Shown here in pieces: positions 1,544 to 37,308 of a stretch of DNA of 64,000 bases. The stretch comes from Paraphysomonas bandaiensis (Eukaryota; Protista; Chrysophyceae). The translations under genes were made by a program, and so were the position numbers. The DNA lies in assembly GCA_965644295.1 (NCBI GenBank), contig CBFFRP010000430.1:231729-295728 (forward strand), in the 5' to 3' direction. Under the pieces are notes generated by a model. That model saw only the letters and a list, made by a program, of their open reading frames with translations. It was not told the origin of the DNA and did not search any database. The stretch's first letter is position 1. Each line of letters opens with the position of its first letter.

Positions 1544-3437
1544 ATGCTGCGCTATCATCGTATTGCAAAATCAGCTACTCCCTGCCGTCGTTTTCTAAGC
1601 ATCGGAACAGGAAGATCACCCAATGAGTCCAGTGGTGGATGGATATTAATCCCCACACTTGCAGTGTCAACAGCATTCGGCACTGCATATATGATTGAAC
1701 ATAAACATATTAATGAAGAAATTTCTGAGAAATTACGGTTTCTTGAACCAATACAGAAAGTGTTACGTGATGCTGGATATGGCAGACATGTTAATCATGA
1801 GCCTGTTAATGTGGAGAAGGAGTCAGAGGCTGATGATGAACATAATAAGCAAGTGAATGATCAGATCAATGCTGAATTGACGGAGTTAGAAAATGCTGTG
1901 GCAGAAGATATTGAATCTGAACCCGTTCAAGAGCAGGAAGAACAATCTACTGATTCGGATGACACTGATGCTGTGTCAACTCCCGATGATGTTGATGCTT
2001 CCCCTCAGAATCAGCACGAGAATGAAGAACAAAATCAGCAGGATTCAGCCACAGAGGAGCAATCGGAGGAGACTGTTCCTGAGCAAACAGAAAATGTTGA
2101 TGAGGAAAATGTAGCTCCATCTACTGACAACTCTTCATCCACCGCTGTCGCAGAGGAAGCGAAAGTCGTGGAGGAGCCCGTTTCAAAAAAGGATGCCGAA
2201 GTCGCAACAGAGAATAGCAAACCAGCAACTGATGCAGAACGCCTACTTGCTCTGCGCGTGTCTGCACTGGAGGAAGTGTTAGGCAAGGCAGCGCGCGACG
2301 CAGCTGATCTCCGTGGGGAGACAGAGCGCACATTGATTCGGGACCTGGAAGAGCTTGACACTGCAGCTCTCCGTTACCGCATCGCCCAGCTGACTACAGA
2401 GTTCTTTGATCGTGTCAAATGGGAGGGCGCCAGACAACAGCAAGCACTTAAGGAGGCTGAAGCTCTCTTCGCTCAGCGATACGGAGAGTTACTATCACAG
2501 CAGAGAGGTGAATTAACTGTGGAGATGGAGCGCCGCGTACTGGAAAAGGAACGAGAGTTGATGAATGTCTACCAGCAGAAGCAAGAAGAAATACAGCTAT
2601 CGTACGAGAAGCGTCTGCAGGAGGCGCTATCTACCCAAGCGGAGAAACTGTCTCGGGGCACCAAGGAGGAAGTGGAGAAGCGAGAAGCAGAGCTCAGGGC
2701 GGAGCTAACCGATGAACACACTCACGAGTTGGCGATGCTAAAGGAGCGTCACGTAAAGTCCCTTCTTGAGGTTCAGAACGAGGTCACTGCAAATAATGCT
2801 CAGCTTGCGGCCCTGCGAGATGTAGTAGATCAGGAATTCGGGCGCACTACTGTATCGTCATCCTCGCACGCTCTCTCAGCCGCTGTTCTCATGGCTGAGT
2901 CCGCGCTACGTTCTTCTTCTTCCGCCAAGAAAGAGCTCGAGGCACTAAGAGTTTATGCGGGAGGTAAACTGGTTTATTTTTATAAATGTCGCTGACTCTG
3001 TAGTTTTAGGCGATGAGCTAATTCTTGCAGTTGTGGACTCCCTACCTCGCGCGGCTTTCACCACCGGTGTACCCAACCTCCCCATCATCAAGGCCCGCTT
3101 TAGCGTTGCCAAAGAGGAGGCACGTAAAGCAGGGCTTGCTCCAGAGGGCGCCCCACCAATGTTGGGACAGATGATTGGCACAGCTTTAGCATATCTGTCT
3201 TTTGAGCCCACAGCTCCGGTGCAAGGGGAGGGAATCGAAGCAGTTTTGTCCCGTGCCGCTTCGCATGTTGATGTTGGAGATCTGCAGCTAGCCCTTGAGG
3301 AGATCGACAGTATCAAAGGCTATCCGCGAACTCTGTTGAGAGATTGGGAGGCGATGGTGCGAGATAGGCTTGTCGCAGATCAAGCGGCCAAGGCTTTACG
3401 AGCTGCTGCGTCAATTAAACACGCTCAGTTTATTTGA
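1544..3437 (+). CDS. MIC60: MICOS subunit Mic60/mitofilin
   Basis: Mitochondrial-type presequence MLRYHRIAKS, one TM helix, acidic region, coiled coil, and a C-terminal mitofilin domain (L.RA...V..GDL..AL.E...W...RDRL..DQA). Intron 2964-3009 (GT-AG) joins the two ORFs in frame. Confidence 0.85.
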
Positions 3438-4027
3438 CTTATTCAATTTTAGCTGAGTATGGTCTTATTGCTTACGTCGTAGTTGTTTGGAGATGATTTT
3501 ACTCTATTGGAACGCAGTATTGTAATTGCACACTAGGTATTTGTACACAGAATAAAGTCAATCAAGTTTCAATTCTTGCTGATAAATTTTGAGATAGAGT
3601 GCTAGAATATAGAATACCACTCAACATTTGAAGTAAGATAACTGAACGCTGAGAGCATCACACTCAATTAATCATTAATTATACACTGTTATAAACTACA
3701 AGTATCAAGTACTAAATTAGATTATTTAATTAATTAACTTCAAGAATTTTATTTGCTAGCGACTACAGAAATTACCAACATAGTAGTATTTCTGCGAGAT
3801 CATAGTCTAGCCACAGTATATTGCCGTATCATTGACGGCATTGTGAATTTGAATGTAACCGTACTAACAAGTAATTAGAAACTATCCTTGCCATACTAAA
3901 AGGAAATTAGACATTAGACAGCAACGAAAATAAAGTGAAGTAGGTCTAGTATATTGAAAAGTCGAAATACGACAACTTGATTAACTTATATCAATCACTA
4001 CATTGCAATCTAGATGCAAATACACGT

Positions 4028-24806: not shown

Positions 24807-26709
24807 TTAAGCAAGAATGGTCTGATATTCACATCTGGTGCCATAGTAACCGTGGAAGCAAGTACATGTGCCATCCGTATAGTCGCAGAGACCACGACCA
24901 GAGCAATCACGACCAGCTTCGTTACCATATCCCTTCAGAACATCCGCTCCAGACGGGCACTCCACTGAGCCCAACAAATTAGAAATATACTATATAATAT
25001 CACAACAACCATATACAATACTTACCAAGTGAACAATCCGGTCCACGACGGCCGAGATCGCAAATACATCCGACGTGCTTCTCAGCATCCCAAGGAGTGG
25101 TGTAAAGCCTTCCAGCCTCAGCAGCCAGTTGAAGCTGAGTGAAACAAACACCAGCATCGCTGCAAGAGTTAGGACAAACGGTCCTCTCGCAGGCAATACC
25201 TTCGTAGTTCTCGAAACAAGAACACTCACCAGTGGATCGACCACAAATACCCTTATTAGAGCATTCAACCACGGGGTGGGCATCGTTTGCCCCCTTGACA
25301 GTGCCAATCCAAGCTGTAGACTTGGGGCATGTGCGACCAGAGCAGTCAGCAAAAGTCCATGCGGGCTCGCCATCTATTCTAGCATAGCATGTGCACTTAC
25401 CATAGGATCCACAAGTACCGTGACCACTGCACCCATTGGGGCAATAGGCAGTAATGACGCTGTGTTGAGGGATAGAATACGATGGCGCCCTGTAGCCAAA
25501 TAGCATAGGCTGCGAATTAGGAACAGAAGTGGGATTCGATGTAGGAATTGCAGTGGGGATTGAGGTGGCCGGTTGCAAAGTGGGATTCGATGTGGGATTT
25601 GAAGAAGGGATTGACGTGGTCGGTTGCAAAGTGGGATTCGATGTGGGATTTGAAGAAGGGATTGACGTGGTCGGTTGCAAAGTGGGATTCGATGTGGGAT
25701 TAGAAGAAGGGATTGACGTGGTCGGTTGCAAAGTGGGAATCGATGTGGGAATTGAAGAGGGGATTGACGTGGTCGGCTGCATTGTAGGATTCGGCAAAAC
25801 GTTAATAATCTGCAATCCTGAAGTACCATCGGTAACATACGCCACATCATTCACCACATACACCCCATGCGCATAATTAGGTGTATCGTAAGAACGCAAT
25901 AGCAATGGGTTGGTCGAATCACTCACGTCAATAATCAGCAGTCCTGAAGTACCATCGGCAACATACGCCACATCATCCACCACATACACCAAACGGGCAA
26001 TATCAGGTGTATCGTAAGAACCCAATAGCACTGGACTGGCCGAATCACTCACGTCAATAATCTGCAATCCTGAAGTATCATCGGTAACATACGCCACATC
26101 ATTCACCACATACACCAAACGGGCAATACCAGGTGTGTCGTAAGAACCCAATAGCACTGGGCTGGCCGAATCACTCACATCAATAATCTGCAATCCTGAA
26201 GTATAATCGGTAACATACGCCACATCATTCACCACATACACCCCAATGGCACGACCAGGTGTATTGTAAGAACCCAATAGCACTGGACTGGTCGAATCAC
26301 TCACGTCAATAATCTGCAATCCTGAAGTATCATCGGAAACATACGCCACATCATTCACCACATACACCACACGGGCAATACCAGGTGTGTCGTAAGAACC
26401 CAATAGCACTGGGCTGGCCGAATCACTCACATCAATAATCTGCAATCCTGATAAATAATCTGCAACATACGCCACATCATTCACAACATACACCCCAAAG
26501 GCACGACCGGATGTAACGTAAGAACCCAATAGCAATGGGCTGGTCGAATCACTCACGTCAATAATCAGCAATCCTGAATTATCGTCGGCAACATACACCA
26601 CATCGTTCACCACATACACCCCACGGGCAATATCAGGTGTATCGTAAGAACCTAGAAGGCTCTGGCCTGCCGTGGCTAGTACGTGTATTGCAATAATGAT
26701 AAGATACAT
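24807..26709 (-). CDS. Secreted chimera: 7 LVIVD repeats, PT-rich stalk, Sig/mastigoneme-type EGF module
   Basis: Signal peptide; seven 42-aa GL.IIDVSD repeats; [10 protein letters not shown] repeats; CPNGCSGHG...ECSNKG...YEGIACER...PWDA.K..GC.CD. Intron 24965-25025 leads to last exon [25 protein letters not shown]...YQTILA*. Confidence 0.88.
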
Positions 26710-27124
26710 GTCTATCTATGATTTCCTTAACCGTTTGTCTGGAACCCCAACAGACAGGTTCGGGTTAACGTAGAGTCCAAACAATGCCCGAGTATGAAAA
26801 TCTATGAGTGATGGAGAAATATGAACAGAGGATTATGAAATCTAAAGATAGATTTAAGGTGTTTGCTTCTTGCTTGCTCTGCACCACAGCAGCCGACAGG
26901 GTTTGCATGGCTGCTTGTCCTCTAAAACGTTTTGAGTAGTCCTCGTAGTGTTTTTTCATCATTTTTATTATGGAAAAATGGTGAAATATGCAAAAAATCC
27001 GGAAATTTGAAACAAGTGACACTATTCCACTGTTCTGATTGGTTAGAAACGGTCCACTAGTAAGAATATGTAGAGATATATGGACGATAATACCACTGTA
27101 TCTTCATGATCAAGTACAGAGTGC

Positions 27125-27483
27125 ATACATACATACAATCATACATACATACATACATACATACATACATACATACATACATACATACATACATACATAC
27201 ATACATACATACATACATACATACATACATACATACATACATACATACATACATACATACATACATACATACATACATACATACATACATACATACATAC
27301 ATACATACATACATACATACATACATACATACATACATACATACATACATACATACATACATACATACATACATACATACATACATACATACATACATAC
27401 ATACATACATACATACATACATGCATACATACATACATACATACATACATACATACCTACCTACCTACCTACCTACCTACCTA
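27125..27483. repeat. (CATA)n microsatellite ending in (CCTA)n
   Basis: Direct inspection. Confidence 0.97.
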
Positions 27484-27846
27484 CTACAGGGATATCAGTG
27501 CACGCTGAGGTTTCGCAGTGGATTGTTTAGGATATTTGTGGCATGGATATCCACAATTGATGAAAGTAATCGTATCATCGTATCAGATGTAGTATTGCTG
27601 CATTTGATTCAATTCATAGTTATAATGGTATGTAACCCTCTCCGATGATGGTGTCTGTCCTTCTTATTGCTTCTGTTAGGCTGATGGATTCCGCTACAAC
27701 GATGCCCATATTGGTGCAGACGTGTTGGATGCTTTTCTTTGGAATGCTGTGACTGGAGACCTTCGTGAGGTACCTATAAAAATTTATTCGCTGTTAATGA
27801 TGAATAATCCATGAGTCGTTATACTTACCAATGAACCTCATTTCTA

Positions 27847-28803
27847 CACTCATGATGCTGTAAGACTGATGACACACTCATGATGATGCTGTAAGACTGA
27901 TGACACACTCATGATGCTGTAAGACTGATGACACACTCATGATGATGCTGTAAGACTGATGACACACTCATGATGCTGTAAGACTGATGACACACTCATG
28001 ATGATGCTGTAAGACTGATGACACACTCATGATGCTGTAAGACTGATGACACACTCATGATGCTGTAAGACTGATGACACACTCATGATGCTGTAAGACT
28101 GATGACACACTCATGATGCTGTAAGACTGATGACACACTCATGATGCTGTAAGACTGATGACACACTCATGATGATGCTGTAAGACTGATGACACACTCA
28201 TGATGCTGTAAGACTGATGACACACTCATGATGCTGTAAGACTGATGACACACTCATGATGATGCTGTAAGACTGATGACACACTCATGATGCTGTAAGA
28301 CTGATGACACACTCATGATGCTGTAAGACTGATGACACACTCATGATGCTGTAAGACTGATGACACATGATGCTGTAAGACTGATGACACACTCATGATG
28401 CTGTAAGACTGATGACACACTCATGATGCTGTAAGACTGATGACACACTCATGATGATGCTGTAAGACTGATGACACACTCATGATGCTGTAAGACTGAT
28501 GACACACTCATGATGCTGTAAGACTGATGACACACTCATGATGATGCTGTAAGACTGATGACACACTCATGATGCTGTAAGACTGATGACACACTCATGA
28601 TGCTGTAAGACTGATGACACACTCATGATGCTGTAAGACTGATGACACACTCATGATGCTGTAAGACTGATGACACACTCATGATGATGCTGTAAGACTG
28701 ATGACACACTCATGATGTTGTAAGACTGATGACACACTCATGATGCTGTAAGACTGATGACACACTCATGATGCTGTAAGACTGATGACACACTCATGAT
28801 GCT
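27847..28803. repeat. Minisatellite of 28-bp and 31-bp units (ACACACTCATGAT[GAT]GCTGTAAGACTGATG), roughly 33 copies
   Basis: Contiguous near-identical tandem units with no unique spacers. Confidence 0.97.
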
Positions 28804-29274
28804 GATGTTCTGATGCTGCTCTACAGTCCACTTCAATGATGCTGCTTTTAGAAGTTTGTTCCCTGAAAACCTCCTTTTTTTTCCGTTGGACTAAAAATAG
28901 GGAGATTTATGCACCCCTGAAAGCCAATGCAGCAATCGAAGTCATTCATTCAGTGAAGGAATGAAGGAAAGTGAGCGCCATCACTCCCAGCATATGAAGA
29001 TCTCAAGATGTCCTGCGGATCATAGAGTGAGTTATGCCCACAGCTTCATGGACCCTCCTCCCCATAACACTCACAGGGACCCATCGCTATATACATACAT
29101 GCTACAGATAGGCTAGATAGACATACACGTACATCTGTGTTATGTAGATATGTATATATGAGCTTATTGTTATGTTCGAGTGTTTGTTGTGATGCTCTGT
29201 AAGCCACTAATATATTGTGTGGTGTGAGATGGTATCTTAGACAGTCACAGTGTGTAATCAATGGATATAGGAAC

Positions 29275-29424: not shown

Positions 29425-29772
29425 TGTTGTCATTTAGAACGTCAACATTAAACTGTGCAGACAGATGTGCAGTAAGCAGGGCTGCGCATCAATTAATTGT
29501 CCATTACTGAATTTGCAATAATTGAAATTGAAACAGCAAGTAACAATTGCAATTATAATTGACTACAACCTGCGTCAATTAATTGACAAGTGATACGCAG
29601 CCCTGGCAGTAAGGAGTCCAATAAGTTGTGATGCCTTACTATTACTATTCACTTTTGACTGCTATAGATACAGAGTGGCAAAACGATGAGGAATGGATTT
29701 AATAACATCATATATTAATTGTTTATAAACAGATATGTGACATGTAGTCCCAACCAGGTAGAGAATACAATA
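29425..29772 (+). repeat. Left copy of ~340-bp direct repeat, containing hAT MITE 29477-29605 (TSD GCAGTAAG)
   Basis: Aligns with 36974-37308 apart from a few substitutions and a 12-bp indel. Confidence 0.92.
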
Positions 29773-30281: not shown

Positions 30282-31098
30282 TTAAGTAGCTGAGCTACCC
30301 GAGTCTTTAAAGTGTCGAATGGACTTTACCAGGATATCAAGTTCAGCACCGGTGTATATTACGAACTCGCGCTCCGAGTAATATAGTTTTTTCTTCTCAT
30401 GTTCTCGGTAAAACTCTTCTTCTGTTTTGTTTTTCTCTTTACAAATCAAATTCTTCGCGTGTTTTGCTATCTTTCGTCTTTTATCATCTCCTATTGGAAA
30501 TTCATCTTTGTATCCGTACACTATGATAACTTCATGAAGTGTAGCACTGTCAAAACAGTGGTCAATCTCATAATCAGTAACTTCTTCGGTATTGTCAGGA
30601 GAAGATTTCCTTCGTTTTTCAGCCATAATTGATATCGTATATTTAGTCAAAGCAATTATCAGTCCATCGACTGTTTTAGTAGGGCTCATCCTCGTAATAC
30701 TGAACATTTCCTCATCAAGTGAGAAACTCAATGATTCGGAAAAAGCAAGATGATTAAGTAGTTCAACAACCCGATTTTCTTTATCACTTTTAATTGTTTC
30801 ATTACCATCATGTGATTGCTTCATACGTGCTGTCGCATTTGGATTCAGGATAGTGATCATATCTTTAGAATATCCTTTTTCACGATAAGGAATACATGTA
30901 ACATCAGGATTACACTCATGAGTTTGAAAAATATCTTGTATGGTTACTGCTTTCCCTCCATCTTTTATTTTTTTAATTAGATTTGATATTTTTTCCCTTG
31001 TAATATCCGTGTATTCATATTGACGCTTTGGCTGTATATACAGTATAGTACTATAAGATTAAGAGTCGTGTATGTTAATCAGAGAATACACTTACCAT
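30282..31098 (-). CDS. Orphan lysine-rich protein (~250 aa), divergent from the NTase gene
   Basis: ATG-only first exon (31096-31098) and intron 31032-31095 (GTAAGT...CAG) extend the 192-aa ORF in frame (M|PKRQYEYTDITREK...). Confidence 0.65.
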
Positions 31099-31240
31099 TC
31101 TGTTGACTTTCTGTAAGATATACAGTGTAGATATAGTGTTCCTTCAGTGATATCCTGCTATATAGATTGAGTTATTATGACTATAGATATATATGTATGT
31201 GACTATATATATATATGCCTGTATGCCTGTATGCCTGTAT

Positions 31241-31610
31241 TCGTATATATTTGTTCAAAGATGTCTCTAATATTGAGACAATAATTATCTCTATTGTAGC
31301 CGTAGTTGTATATCAGTAATACGGAGTAATTTTGCTTCAAAGATTTCCCGAATACGGCCTGTATGATTATGCTGGACCATAGCAGGCTCTACAGTAGACC
31401 GCGTATACACTACACAGCAGTAGGAATTCCTGTATATATCTGGATAGTTCCAAGAAATTCCTAGTTCTTTCAGCATCTTATTTTTCGGAAATATACTGAA
31501 GCAAATATCAATTATATTACTGCAATATAACTACGGCTAGAATACACATAATTATTGTCTCAATATTAGAGGCACCTTTGAACAAAAAATATATGAAGGA
31601 TGCCAATATG
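31241..31610. repeat. ~150-bp dispersed element, copies E (-, ~31241-31353) and F (+, 31471-31610)
   Basis: Same core as copies A-D; inverted pair in the divergent promoter. Confidence 0.82.
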
Positions 31611-31785
31611 CGAAATAGTCCAAACCCTGGACAAAAACAATCAGTATCCACCACTGTATCATACAGTACCATATAGATAGATATACACACTACATACCAC
31701 ACACATAGCTATATAGCAGCATTTCAGTGGCAATTACAGTAAGCACAAGAGTTCATTCATCTACTTCACACTGTTATTTACAAGT

Positions 31786-33382
31786 ATGGTTGAATATGAT
31801 ATACCAGAACATCTCATGAATAATAAAACACTTCATGGACAATTCGAACGTTTTATTAACACGAAATCATCATCAATCGATGAGAAAATCATCCACAGGG
31901 TCATGGATATTGTAACCGAAGTGGTTCATACGCACAAGACCAATGCGAGATATGCTGGAAGTTATTATAAAGGGACATATGTGGGGCTCTATTCTGACGT
32001 TGATATCGTGGTGGCAATTCCTGTGGACGAGAATAATCCTAATCCTGTGACAAAGAAGCAACGTATTCCTGTGACAAGGAAGCAATGTAAGAAAATCGCG
32101 AACGAGGTAAGGGAAAAATTGAACGAAGATGGATTGAAAGTTAAGCGAATGATGTACCACCGAGTGTCGGTACAGTTTGACCTTGACAGTATTTCGTTTG
32201 ATCTGGTGTTTGATGTGCCACCCGTAGAAAAAATTGATCCTAGCACTGCACGTGCTATCCGAGCCCTGAAATTTTTATCCAGGGAGGTAGTAATAAATTA
32301 TAAATCACTAATTCATTACTGTATATATAGAATCCAGTAATATTTCCTCGTGTAAGTGGTTTTGAGCTGGAAAACTTTGTCGTGGAAGTGGAGAAAGAAT
32401 TGAATAAGAGCGAAAGGTCCACAGACACAAGTGGATTTATTCTGTTTCTAAAATGCCTGAAAGTACTTGCCAAAGAAGAATGCAAAATTAAATGTGATTG
32501 GAGTAGCGGTGCTGCCAACATACTACATTTTATTAAGCAGACGGATTTGACCAAAGAAGATTGTTTGCTAAGTAAGTTTTGAGATCAGTCAACTACTTTC
32601 ACTAATATTTACAAGTGTTGTCGACTATGTTATACCAAGCAATGTGCCTCACGAATTATAAAAGAGTCCACGGACAGTTCGAACATTACGTTAACTCGAG
32701 AGCATCATTAATCGATGAGAATATCATACACAGGGTCATGGGTAGTGTGAACAAAGTGGTTCATAAGCATAAGACCAATGCGGGATATGCAGGAAGCTAT
32801 CGTAAAGGGACATATGTGGGTCGCTATTCTGACGTTGATATCGTGGTAGGTATTCCTGTGACAAAGAAGCAACGTAAGAAAATCGCGAATGAAGTAAGGG
32901 AAAAATTGAACCAAGGTGGATTGAAAGTTAAGCAAATGATGTACAAACCAGTGGCGGTACTGTTTGACCTTGACAGTATTTCGTTTGATCTGGTGTTTGA
33001 TGTGCCACCCGTAGAAAAAATTGATCCTAGCACTGCACGTGCTATCCGAGCCCTGAAACTTTTATCCAGAGAGGTAATTTTGAATAAAAAATAATTTATT
33101 TCATTACTATATCTATAGAATCCAGAACGATTTCCTCGTATAAGTGGTATAAAGCTGGAAAACTTTGTTTTGGGAGTGAAAACAACATCGGGTTCCACAG
33201 ATACAAGCGGTTTTATTCTTTTTCTAATATGCTTGGCACAACTTGCGGGAAAATGTAGATTTGAAGTATCAAAGGACAAGAAACGCACTTGGAGAATTAG
33301 TGTAGCCGAAACTCTAAAGATTATAAAGACGATGGATTGGACCAACAAAGAGGTTTGTTTCGAGAAACTATTCAAGCGCTAA
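31786..33382 (+). CDS. Tandem two-domain OAS/CD-NTase (SMODS)-like nucleotidyltransferase
   Basis: Each unit has GSY.KGTYVG.YSDVDIVV, FDLV, RAIRALK and SG(FE/IK)LE. Predicted exons 31786-32286, 32331-32571, 32616-33073, 33119-33382 total 1464 nt, i.e. 487 aa. Alternatively two separate genes. Confidence 0.85.
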
Positions 33383-33854
33383 GAACACAGATGTAAAGCG
33401 ATTCTTCCTCTTTAAAATTCCCGAAAGGAACACTTATCATGGTTTTGTGGCTACTGGACTTTTACTGAAATGTATAGGCAATAATGTTAGAGTTGAAAGA
33501 GTGACCCTTGGAGTACTCAGTACTCAATATTAAATTGATTGCTATTGTGATACTTTTCTCACCTTTCCTTTCAACTTGCTGTACTGATTAGCTTCCATAG
33601 AGTTAAACAAAACTTAACGTTACCTCATTAACGTCTATCATCTACTAATAATCTAATATCTAACACCTTCTTTGACCTTAATAATGTAGAATTCAAGAAC
33701 AATAAAAAACTATAAAAGTATTTGGAGAAGTGGTGCTGTCGGCCAGGGCCTGATAACCATTAACGGGTTATTAATTGTAATGCCATTATAATCACCGGGA
33801 ATTGGGCATCTATTAACGGAATTTTATGGTACCTGATATCCTGATATATGCTAT

Positions 33855-33982
33855 AAAGAATTAAGTGGTTTTAAGATATAGAATCTCCTCTATTCTAGGA
33901 AGTGTCGACACACTAGATGTTATTAAGCAGATGGATATGACCGAAGAAAATTATTTCCAATCATTGTTTAAATGTTGTTAAA
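33855..33982 (+). pseudogene. Relic of a third NTase unit (C-terminal part)
   Basis: TAAGTGGTTTTAAG and TLDVIKQMDMTEENYFQSLFK match the unit ends ILHFIKQTDLTKEDC and TLKIIKTMDWTNKEVCFEKLFK. Confidence 0.6.
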
Positions 33983-36973: not shown

Positions 36974-37308
36974 TGTTGTCATTTAGAACGTCAACATTGA
37001 ACTGTGCAGACAGATATGCAGTAAGCAGGGCTGCGCATCAATTAATTGTCCATTACTGAATTTGCAATAATTGAAATTGAAACAGCAAGTAACAATTGAC
37101 TACAACCTGCGTCAATTAATTGACAAGTGATACACAGCCCTGGCAGTAAGGAGTCCAATAAGATGTGGTGCCTTACTATTACTATTCACTTTTGACTGCA
37201 TAGATACAGAGTGGAAAAACGATGAGGAATGGATTTAATAACATCATATATTAATTGTTTATAAACAGATATGTGACATGTAGTCCCAATCAGGTAGAGA
37301 GTACAATA
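36974..37308 (+). repeat. Right copy of ~340-bp direct repeat, containing hAT MITE 37026-37142 (TSD GCAGTAAG)
   Basis: Aligns with 29425-29772. Confidence 0.92.

Follow-up and report, generated by a model that had tools for sequence, protein, structure and literature searches.

The locus at 31786–33382 of the window (by which we mean the whole 64-kb stretch of Paraphysomonas bandaiensis DNA that was analysed) is probably a tandem gene for a ~250-aa nucleotidyltransferase (NTase), whose two units are fused by splicing and could together form a two-site enzyme of 487 aa. Established here are the units themselves, the splice that joins them, the common frame and the motifs, as well as the fold of the family, the latter on a homologue.

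The two homologous units, each of ~250 aa, occupy 31786–32582 and 32616–33382 of the (+) strand. Their DNA is 84% identical over about 790 nt, and they match each other at E 2e-67 (tblastn); judged by these sequence comparisons, the likeness is far above the chance level. All indels between the units are in frame. The initial annotation had described two such units with a shared set of motifs, and its coordinates and features hold, apart from small corrections. Each unit is interrupted by a GT..AG intron, of 44 nt in unit 1 (intron 1) and of 45 nt in unit 2 (intron 3). The frame of unit 1 starts with the ATG at 31786, reopens at 32331 and closes at the TGA at 32580–32582, while that of unit 2 is open from 32615 to 33073 and again from 33119 to 33379, up to the TAA at 33380–33382. 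The four exons (Table 1) total 1461 nt, or 487 codons.

The duplicated segment also includes ~40 nt upstream of the unit 1 ATG, hence the stretch between the units, 32572–32615, is largely a copy of the unit 1 leader. At the place homologous to the unit 1 ATG, unit 2 has GTT in the unit-to-unit alignment, in line with the loss of its ancestral start codon proposed earlier. No other copies of the units were found in the 62.5-Mb genome. As for the surroundings, the gene sits in a 7.9-kb stretch between 345-nt direct repeats, and a high-copy inverted-repeat element at 31250–31586 adjoins it. The ORFs neighbouring the tandem gene yielded no Pfam family, and the scans of the 64-kb window for Rfam families and tRNAs no match.

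Table 1. Features of the tandem gene and its vicinity, in window coordinates.
Feature	Coordinates	Strand	Remarks
5' untranslated leader	31702..31785	+	X1 RNA contigs begin at 31702; the related-strain contig L003 begins at 31656
Exon 1, unit 1 N-lobe, 167 codons	31786..32286	+	G58-S59, S70-D71-x-D73, D139, RAIRALK helix
Intron 1, 44 nt	32287..32330	+	GT..AG, CACTAAT, frame-shifting; at the conserved intron position of the family
Exon 2, unit 1 C-lobe	32331..32571	+	begins with NPVIFPRVSGFELE; family-invariant F, S-G, L-F, L and W kept
Fusion intron, 44 nt	32572..32615	+	GTAAGT..CACTAAT..AAG; holds the unit 1 TGA (32580-32582)
Linker segment	32616..32642	+	part of the exon in the window's strain, spliced out with the intron in the related one
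Exon 3	32616..33073	+	junction codon A/TG, linker, unit 2 N-lobe with intact GS, S-D-x-D and D
Intron 3, 45 nt	33074..33118	+	GT..AG; removed in X1 and X3, kept in X9 and L003
Exon 4, unit 2 C-lobe and TAA stop	33119..33382	+	
3' untranslated region	33383..33501	+	RNA contigs end at 33477 and 33501; L003 extends to 33576
Third-unit C-terminal tail remnant	33898..33969	+	81% DNA identity to 32513-32566; without RNA contig coverage

The RNA runs were examined as assembled contigs, which show the presence of a form, not amounts or whole molecules, and from which minor isoforms are dropped. Two of them, X1 and X3, are polyA metatranscriptome runs of one sample, with contigs identical to the window. 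In both, a 706-nt contig joins 32242–32571 to 32616–32991, skipping 44 nt bounded by GT..AG, with 255-nt flanks and no mismatches. A fusion intron at exactly this place had been predicted from the letters, along with its length of 44 nt, its CACTAAT and the stop codon of unit 1 inside it. All these properties, including the same length as that of intron 1, are as claimed, and the RNA across 32571/32616, where the initial annotation had proposed to look, shows the junction with the stretch removed; the intron is thus real. Its removal gives CTA A/TG TTG (the slash marks the junction), in frame with unit 2. A second contig from the same two runs joins 33073 to 33119. In total, RNA contigs tile 31702–33501, the sole break being a stretch identical in both units, and their depth increases from the 5' to the 3' end (38, 78, 97), which is the pattern expected of a single polyA transcript. 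PolyA RNA of the locus is present in several independent studies.

A second variant type of the locus comes from the RNA run X9, the JGI contig L003 (reached through P0001, the sole close database protein) and the DNA-like run X18. The RNA of this strain lacks 71 nt (X9) or 68 nt (L003), counted from the same GT as in the fusion intron. The respective acceptors lie after 32642 and after 32639, 27 or 24 nt downstream of the 44-nt acceptor; both junctions are in frame, and an uninterrupted 214-aa ORF crosses the one in L003. Run X18 has the same variant letters as X9 and L003, and as its depth is even (~107) over exons, introns and spacers, we read it as genomic DNA. The stretch missing from the RNA is kept in X18, with two substitutions: 32615 G>A removes the acceptor of the 44-nt intron, and a new AG arises through 32642 A>G. 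Together with the junctions in X9 and L003, these letters indicate that the second strain has lost the old acceptor and uses neighbouring ones. A genomic deletion would also have explained why L003 and X9 lack this stretch, but it was rejected, since X18 of the same variant type retains the stretch. Three different junctions in two strains are hence all in frame, which by chance would occur in about 1 case in 9; this supports, only modestly, selection for maintenance of the fused frame.

On the claim of a single 487-aa protein, the RNA points both ways: X1 and X3 lack the fusion intron as well as intron 3, but intron 1 (32287–32330) is retained in all four RNA assemblies (X1, X3, X9, L003), and in X1 and X3 it is kept in the same contig from which the fusion intron has been removed. 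Reading through intron 1 leads to a stop at 32338–32340 and a 184-aa product consisting of the N-lobe only; thus, the main assembled isoform does not encode the 487-aa protein. Nevertheless, intron 1 is a true intron, as follows from three observations. Exon 2 starts with NPVIFPRVSGFELE, exactly where the contiguous homologues go on after LKLLSKK; a GT..AG intron is present at the same codon in three distant homologues; and the C-lobe exon of unit 1 keeps all family-invariant residues, with no stop or frameshift in either strain. The truncated ORFs of homologues were also considered as a sign that retention of this intron in RNA is itself conserved; this was rejected, as at least one of the contigs comes from a DNA metagenome, and only the intron position is conserved. 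The 487-aa product was absent from three protein searches, two of them blind to proteins of that length and the third covering cluster representatives only. We consider the two-domain protein plausible.

Both units keep the complete motif set, that is, G-S, S-D-x-D, the third Asp in F-D-L-V, the RAIRALK helix and SGF/I..LE, in agreement with the earlier statement that both catalytic triads are intact. In the numbering of unit 1, G58-S59, D71-x-D73 and D139 are present in both units, in columns that are invariant or nearly so in 29–34 family members. Over the family columns, S59, S70, D71 and D73 are invariant, and G58, D126, F129 and K161 are nearly so; neither unit deviates at any of them. 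Neither unit has a frameshift or a stop in either strain. The dN/dS ratio between the units is 0.63 for the N-lobes and 0.52 for the C-lobes, and that of unit 2 between the strains is about 0.5. Such values (0.5–0.6) indicate no more than mild constraint and would suit a rapidly evolving defence gene as well as relaxed selection.

The natural ORF that crosses the junction in L003 was used as the query of an exhaustive HMMER search, which retrieved 27 remote homologues (30–48% identity) from marine metagenomes and metatranscriptomes. None of these 27 has a Pfam family for the NTase-like domain; four carry an N-terminal GTPase of the MMR_HSR1 type, and one has a weak C2H2 zinc-finger match below the Pfam cut-off. 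All sequence searches were run on exon pieces or natural ORFs. With the exon pieces, Pfam yielded weak matches to NTP_transf_2 (E 3e-5 and 9e-4), and two further models stayed below their curated thresholds: SMODS (PF18144) with 17.6 and 15.6 bits against 26.5, and the NCBIfam model CBASS_cyclase_b with 23 bits against 200; the complete homologues fail these thresholds too. There was no OAS1_C, Mab-21 (PF03281), PAP_assoc, PAP-OAS1 or DZF match in the exon pieces and/or the 34 family members. When the family profile was compared to all PDB sequences, all 11 matches (E from 1e-3) were to OAS1, OAS2, CdnC, CdnD and CdnE. Cyclase models of PADLOC match 22 of the 34 members, with E down to 1e-8; among the NCBIfam models, CBASS_cyclase_b matches 15 members and cca_archaeal 12, and SMODS is the commonest Pfam family among the weak matches (6 of 34).

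The fold of a complete unit was modelled on the natural homologue P0025; a single-sequence AlphaFold model of exon 1 (pLDDT 40.8) was unusable and was set aside. The AlphaFold (AF2) model of P0025, built with the family alignment (pLDDT 86.4, pTM 0.83), is two-lobed, with an NTase core and a C-terminal helical lobe, to which the window's exon 2 pieces align. Among solved structures it matches two-lobed template-independent NTases with Z 14–16 over ~225–235 residues: the DZF domains of NF45/NF90 (15.5–16.3), yeast PAP (15.1), Cid1 and OAS3 domain I (14.9), CutA and CdnD (14.7), and OASL, GLD-2, CdnG and DncV (14.4). The bacterial CdnD, CdnB, CdnE, CdnG and DncV taken together have Z 13.8–14.7 over ~225 residues, and CCA enzymes are absent among the best 50 solved-structure matches. 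For this model, the PDB scores of DZF, PAP, Cid1, OAS3, CdnD and DncV are effectively tied. In the ESM Atlas, the top shapes are bacterial SMODS clusters (TM 0.73 and 0.71/0.72, the second being a 253-aa protein), and SMODS is carried by 29 of the 30 clusters nearest by language-model features. The structural comparison with OAS and Cdn enzymes, made on the homologue model, thus goes both ways: SMODS proteins come out on top in the Atlas, but the scores against solved structures are shared with PAP, Cid1 and DZF.

As to the origin of the family, an alignment of exon 1 retrieved no related loci from metagenome and viral contigs, and tblastn against plasmids gave at best a generic nucleotidyltransferase with E 0.7. 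The search of BFVD revealed no close viral relative, the best match being a Hyperionvirus ORF with TM of only 0.53; on this ground a viral origin was dropped. No bacterial relative was close enough to be retrieved, and the spliceosomal intron, being conserved, speaks against recent acquisition from bacteria. In the window's genome, Pfam SMODS had no match; prok_STING and SAVED had none either, but the controls were equally silent.

The assignment to OAS/CD-NTase enzymes made in the initial annotation is hence supported in one respect and weakened in another. The nearest relatives by sequence and predicted structure are SMODS/CD-NTase and OAS proteins, but the curated thresholds are missed, OAS1_C and Mab-21 are lacking in the searches described above, and the PDB scores are level with those of PAP, Cid1 and DZF. 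On balance, we tend to regard the units as members of a divergent family of eukaryotes that belongs to the OAS/CD-NTase group or is adjacent to it.

With OAS1 (porcine, 1px5, and human) the family profile aligns without gaps over GS-x11-D-x-D and the third Asp (E 0.0015 for 1px5), and the GS-to-DxD spacing of the units is that of OAS1; it differs, as we take it, from the spacing in PAP-type enzymes. The scores of OAS3 domain I and OASL reflect the common two-lobed template-independent NTase fold. On the other hand, the units are ~100 aa shorter than OAS and have no OAS1_C domain (PF10421; E up to 1 for the exon 2 pieces and up to 0.1 for the 34 members). OAS2 and OAS3 likewise carry the unit repeated in tandem within a single polypeptide, with inactive N-terminal domains. 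In contrast, here both units keep the catalytic residues, and the duplication is recent and lineage-specific.

The bacterial CD-NTases/SMODS (CdnB, CdnC, CdnD, CdnE, CdnG, DncV) are the best matches by PADLOC, by CBASS_cyclase_b and by Atlas features and shape, and the small bacterial SMODS proteins, at ~250 aa, have the same size as the units. Unlike these, the gene is eukaryotic and a tandem fusion, has an ancient conserved spliceosomal intron and is accompanied by no CBASS-type operon or recognisable effector, and all its scores are under the curated thresholds. Three eukaryotic CD-NTase superfamilies have been described, eSMODS, OAS-like and cGLR (Culbertson and Levin 2023, PMC10732462), whose respective criteria are SMODS as the best-scoring hmmscan domain along with PF01909, OAS1_C, and Mab21 (PMC10732462). 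The eSMODS reported there come from Amoebozoa, choanoflagellates, Ancyromonadida and a sponge; stramenopiles are not among the sources, and no tandem form is mentioned in that study (PMC10732462). The present family is likewise eukaryotic, protist-borne and CD-NTase-like, whereas SMODS never reaches the threshold in it and OAS1_C and Mab21 are absent; hence its membership in OAS, cGLR or eSMODS, as defined there (PMC10732462), is not demonstrated.

The highest Z among solved structures belongs to the DZF domains of NF45/NF90 (ILF2/ILF3), over 229–235 residues. These domains pair, the matched entries being NF90–NF45 dimerisation-domain complexes, which recalls two units held together. DZF domains are described as catalytically inactive; the two units, in contrast, have GS, DxD and D intact, and give no DZF_N or DZF_C match in Pfam. 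Finally, Cid1, GLD-2, TUT7, Trf4 and canonical PAP share the two-lobed fold (Z 14–15), and there are weak matches to an MTPAP-like palm; in contrast to these enzymes, the family lacks PAP_assoc (PF03828) and PAP-OAS1 (PF26180), and they are absent from the PDB-sequence matches of the profile.

Three other explanations of the locus have to be weighed, two concerning the fate of the transcript and one the chemistry of the product. If the locus yields nothing beyond single-unit or truncated proteins, the 44-nt intron would be a leader intron of the unit 2 message, and the in-frame junction would have no consequence for the protein; translation of unit 2, if any, would start at the junction ATG or at the ATG at 32627, either through reinitiation or on shorter transcripts. 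The retention of intron 1 in X1, X3, X9 and L003, with the fusion intron removed from the same contig, would then be expected, as would the creation of an ATG by the splice, followed by in-frame ATGs at 32627 and 32642, and the lack of a full-length product in the protein searches. The depth over 31702–32204, half of that downstream, fits as well, although the gradient can equally be explained by 3' bias, and minor spliced forms are hidden in contigs. What makes this explanation rather unlikely in our view is that the three junctions of the two strains are all in frame, that the boundaries of intron 1 restore the family sequence exactly, and that the C-lobe exon of unit 1 keeps its invariant residues with neither stop nor frameshift, which would be unexpected in a leader. 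Alternatively, the locus could be a decaying duplicate, still transcribed and spliced, in which at least one of the units is turning into a pseudogene and the splicing of intron 1 has been lost. Intron retention in the RNA assemblies and the dN/dS of 0.5–0.6 could be read in this way, as could the third-unit remnant, the transposon-like repeats that flank the locus and the lack of further copies in the genome. We consider decay quite improbable, given that in two strains both units lack stops and frameshifts, all invariant residues are kept, the unit-to-unit indels are in frame, the second strain replaced its lost acceptor with new in-frame ones, and polyA RNA is seen in independent studies.

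The units might also be RNA 3'-end tailing enzymes of the non-canonical poly(A)/uridylyl transferase type, in which case the tandem would be a duplicated RNA-modifying enzyme. In favour of such a function, yeast PAP, Cid1, CutA, GLD-2 and TUT7 (Z 14–15) are level with OAS3 and CdnD; in addition, 4 of the 34 members weakly match MTPAP-like_central, and a cluster with an MTPAP-like palm and ankyrin repeats is among the top Atlas shapes. However, a Pfam match to PAP_assoc or PAP-OAS1 occurs in 0 of the 34 members, the PDB-sequence matches of the profile comprise OAS and CD-NTases only, with no PAP or TUTase, the Atlas language-model features and top shapes point to SMODS, and ~250 aa is the size of small bacterial SMODS proteins. 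A tailing function thus seems to us a minority possibility.

Under the preferred reading, that of a fused tandem gene with a potential two-site product, a gene for a ~250-aa two-lobed nucleotidyltransferase of the Pol-beta type was duplicated in tandem, and a single polyadenylated RNA, extending from about 31700 to about 33500, is transcribed from the copies. The 44-nt GT..AG intron at 32572–32615 arose from the duplicated upstream leader and encloses the stop codon of unit 1; its splicing joins the C-lobe of unit 1 in frame to unit 2 via an ATG codon made at the junction. Each unit comprises an N-lobe, with a GS loop and three Asp for the binding of metal and NTP, and a helical C-lobe. If intron 1 is removed as well, the product would be a 487-aa enzyme with two potentially active sites, while the abundant assembled isoform, which keeps intron 1, would stop after the first N-lobe. 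We infer translation as a two-domain protein, template-independent condensation of NTPs and a role in signalling; each unit would bind two metal ions and an NTP and condense nucleotides without a template. A messenger-synthase or antiviral role, suggested by analogy from family resemblance alone, is possible, though doubtful. More speculative, and in our opinion unlikely as a whole, is a scheme in which the family forms an undescribed branch of the OAS/CD-NTase group, born in eukaryotes and living in marine protists, and the tandem is a two-site messenger synthase acting in antiviral or anti-prey-derived sensing of nucleic acids, with its output gated by retention of intron 1. As long as this ancient phase-0 intron of the family stays in the message, the protein would end behind the N-lobe.

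To our knowledge, nucleotide-messenger immunity (OAS, cGAS, CBASS) is a matter of animals and bacteria and is almost unstudied in free-living protists. The locus provides a specific candidate, and an expressed one, from a marine flagellate of the chrysophyte type; its family is missed by curated domain models. A stop codon within a very short intron is enough for gene callers to split this one gene into four pieces. Two intact catalytic units make up an architecture not found in OAS2/OAS3, and the re-invention of the splice site, in frame, in the sister strain argues that selection keeps the fusion. If the product tails RNA, the locus would be a modest curiosity of gene structure; if it makes a messenger, its receptor and effector in stramenopiles would be new.

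The two nucleotidyltransferase (NTase) units differ overall by 16%, although a stretch of 97 nt (32175-32271 in unit 1, 32962-33058 in unit 2) is identical in both, and RNA assemblers merge the two copies into a single contig of double depth. In the second strain, the N-terminal part of unit 1 resembles unit 2. Taken together, the identical stretch and the unit-2-like start of unit 1 in that strain suggest that the two units have undergone gene conversion with each other. Downstream, a repeat at 33748-33881 (depth approximately 5,200 in X18, a DNA-like run of the second strain) is followed by the remnant of a third unit (see the table), and no RNA contig covers this remnant.

The NTase gene lies in a 7.9-kb island between direct repeats, together with a minus-strand 192-aa ORF and a 425-aa ORF, whose hydrophobic N-terminus may be a signal peptide. 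Both ORFs lack a Pfam family, and neither a transposase nor a reverse transcriptase was seen. The 192-aa ORF lies within the span of a spliced gene: contigs of the polyA RNA runs X1 and X3 skip 64 nt (31032-31095), with minus-strand borders GT..AG (CT..AC as read on the plus strand). In the arms of the inverted-repeat element preceding the NTase gene, X18 depth is 48,000-120,000 vs. approximately 107 elsewhere, so that the element appears to be a MITE-like repeat whose copies number from hundreds to roughly 1,000. Further upstream, the LVIVD repeat occurs six times (E 9e-50) in the 569-aa ORF, along with a Pro/Thr-rich linker and EGF domains of the teneurin type.

Features of the window and of homologue loci (L009-L011)
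Feature	Position	Strand	Remarks
569-aa ORF	25000-26709	minus	domain matches
Two long tandem arrays	27044-27600; 27764-28900		periods 8 nt and 28/31 nt; upstream of island
Direct repeats	29425-29772; 36974-37308		345 nt, 97-98% identical; flank island
Spliced gene	30282-31145	minus	weakly expressed; X1 and X3 contigs
192-aa ORF	30282-30860	minus	no known family; within span of spliced gene
Inverted-repeat element	31250-31586		immediately 5' of NTase gene; arms 72 nt, 89% complementary, spacing 193 nt
Third-unit remnant	33898-33969		C-terminal tail; 81% DNA identity to 32513-32566
Family intron	L009 ~1820-1920; L010 ~3477-3545; L011 ~2945-3000		three distant members

Among the distant homologues of the NTase unit, P0004, P0005, P0019 and P0021 (loci L008, L009 and L010) carry an N-terminal small GTPase of the MMR_HSR1 type. 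In P0006, a C2H2 zinc finger is weakly matched 5' of the NTase. In P0016, a similarity of the upstream sequence is visible by eye, without any Pfam match. The GTPase-NTase and zinc-finger-NTase architectures are apparently undescribed. In three distant members of the family and in both window units, an intron directly follows the ALKLLS-K-x helix at the same codon; this phase-0 intron is ancient in the NTase family.
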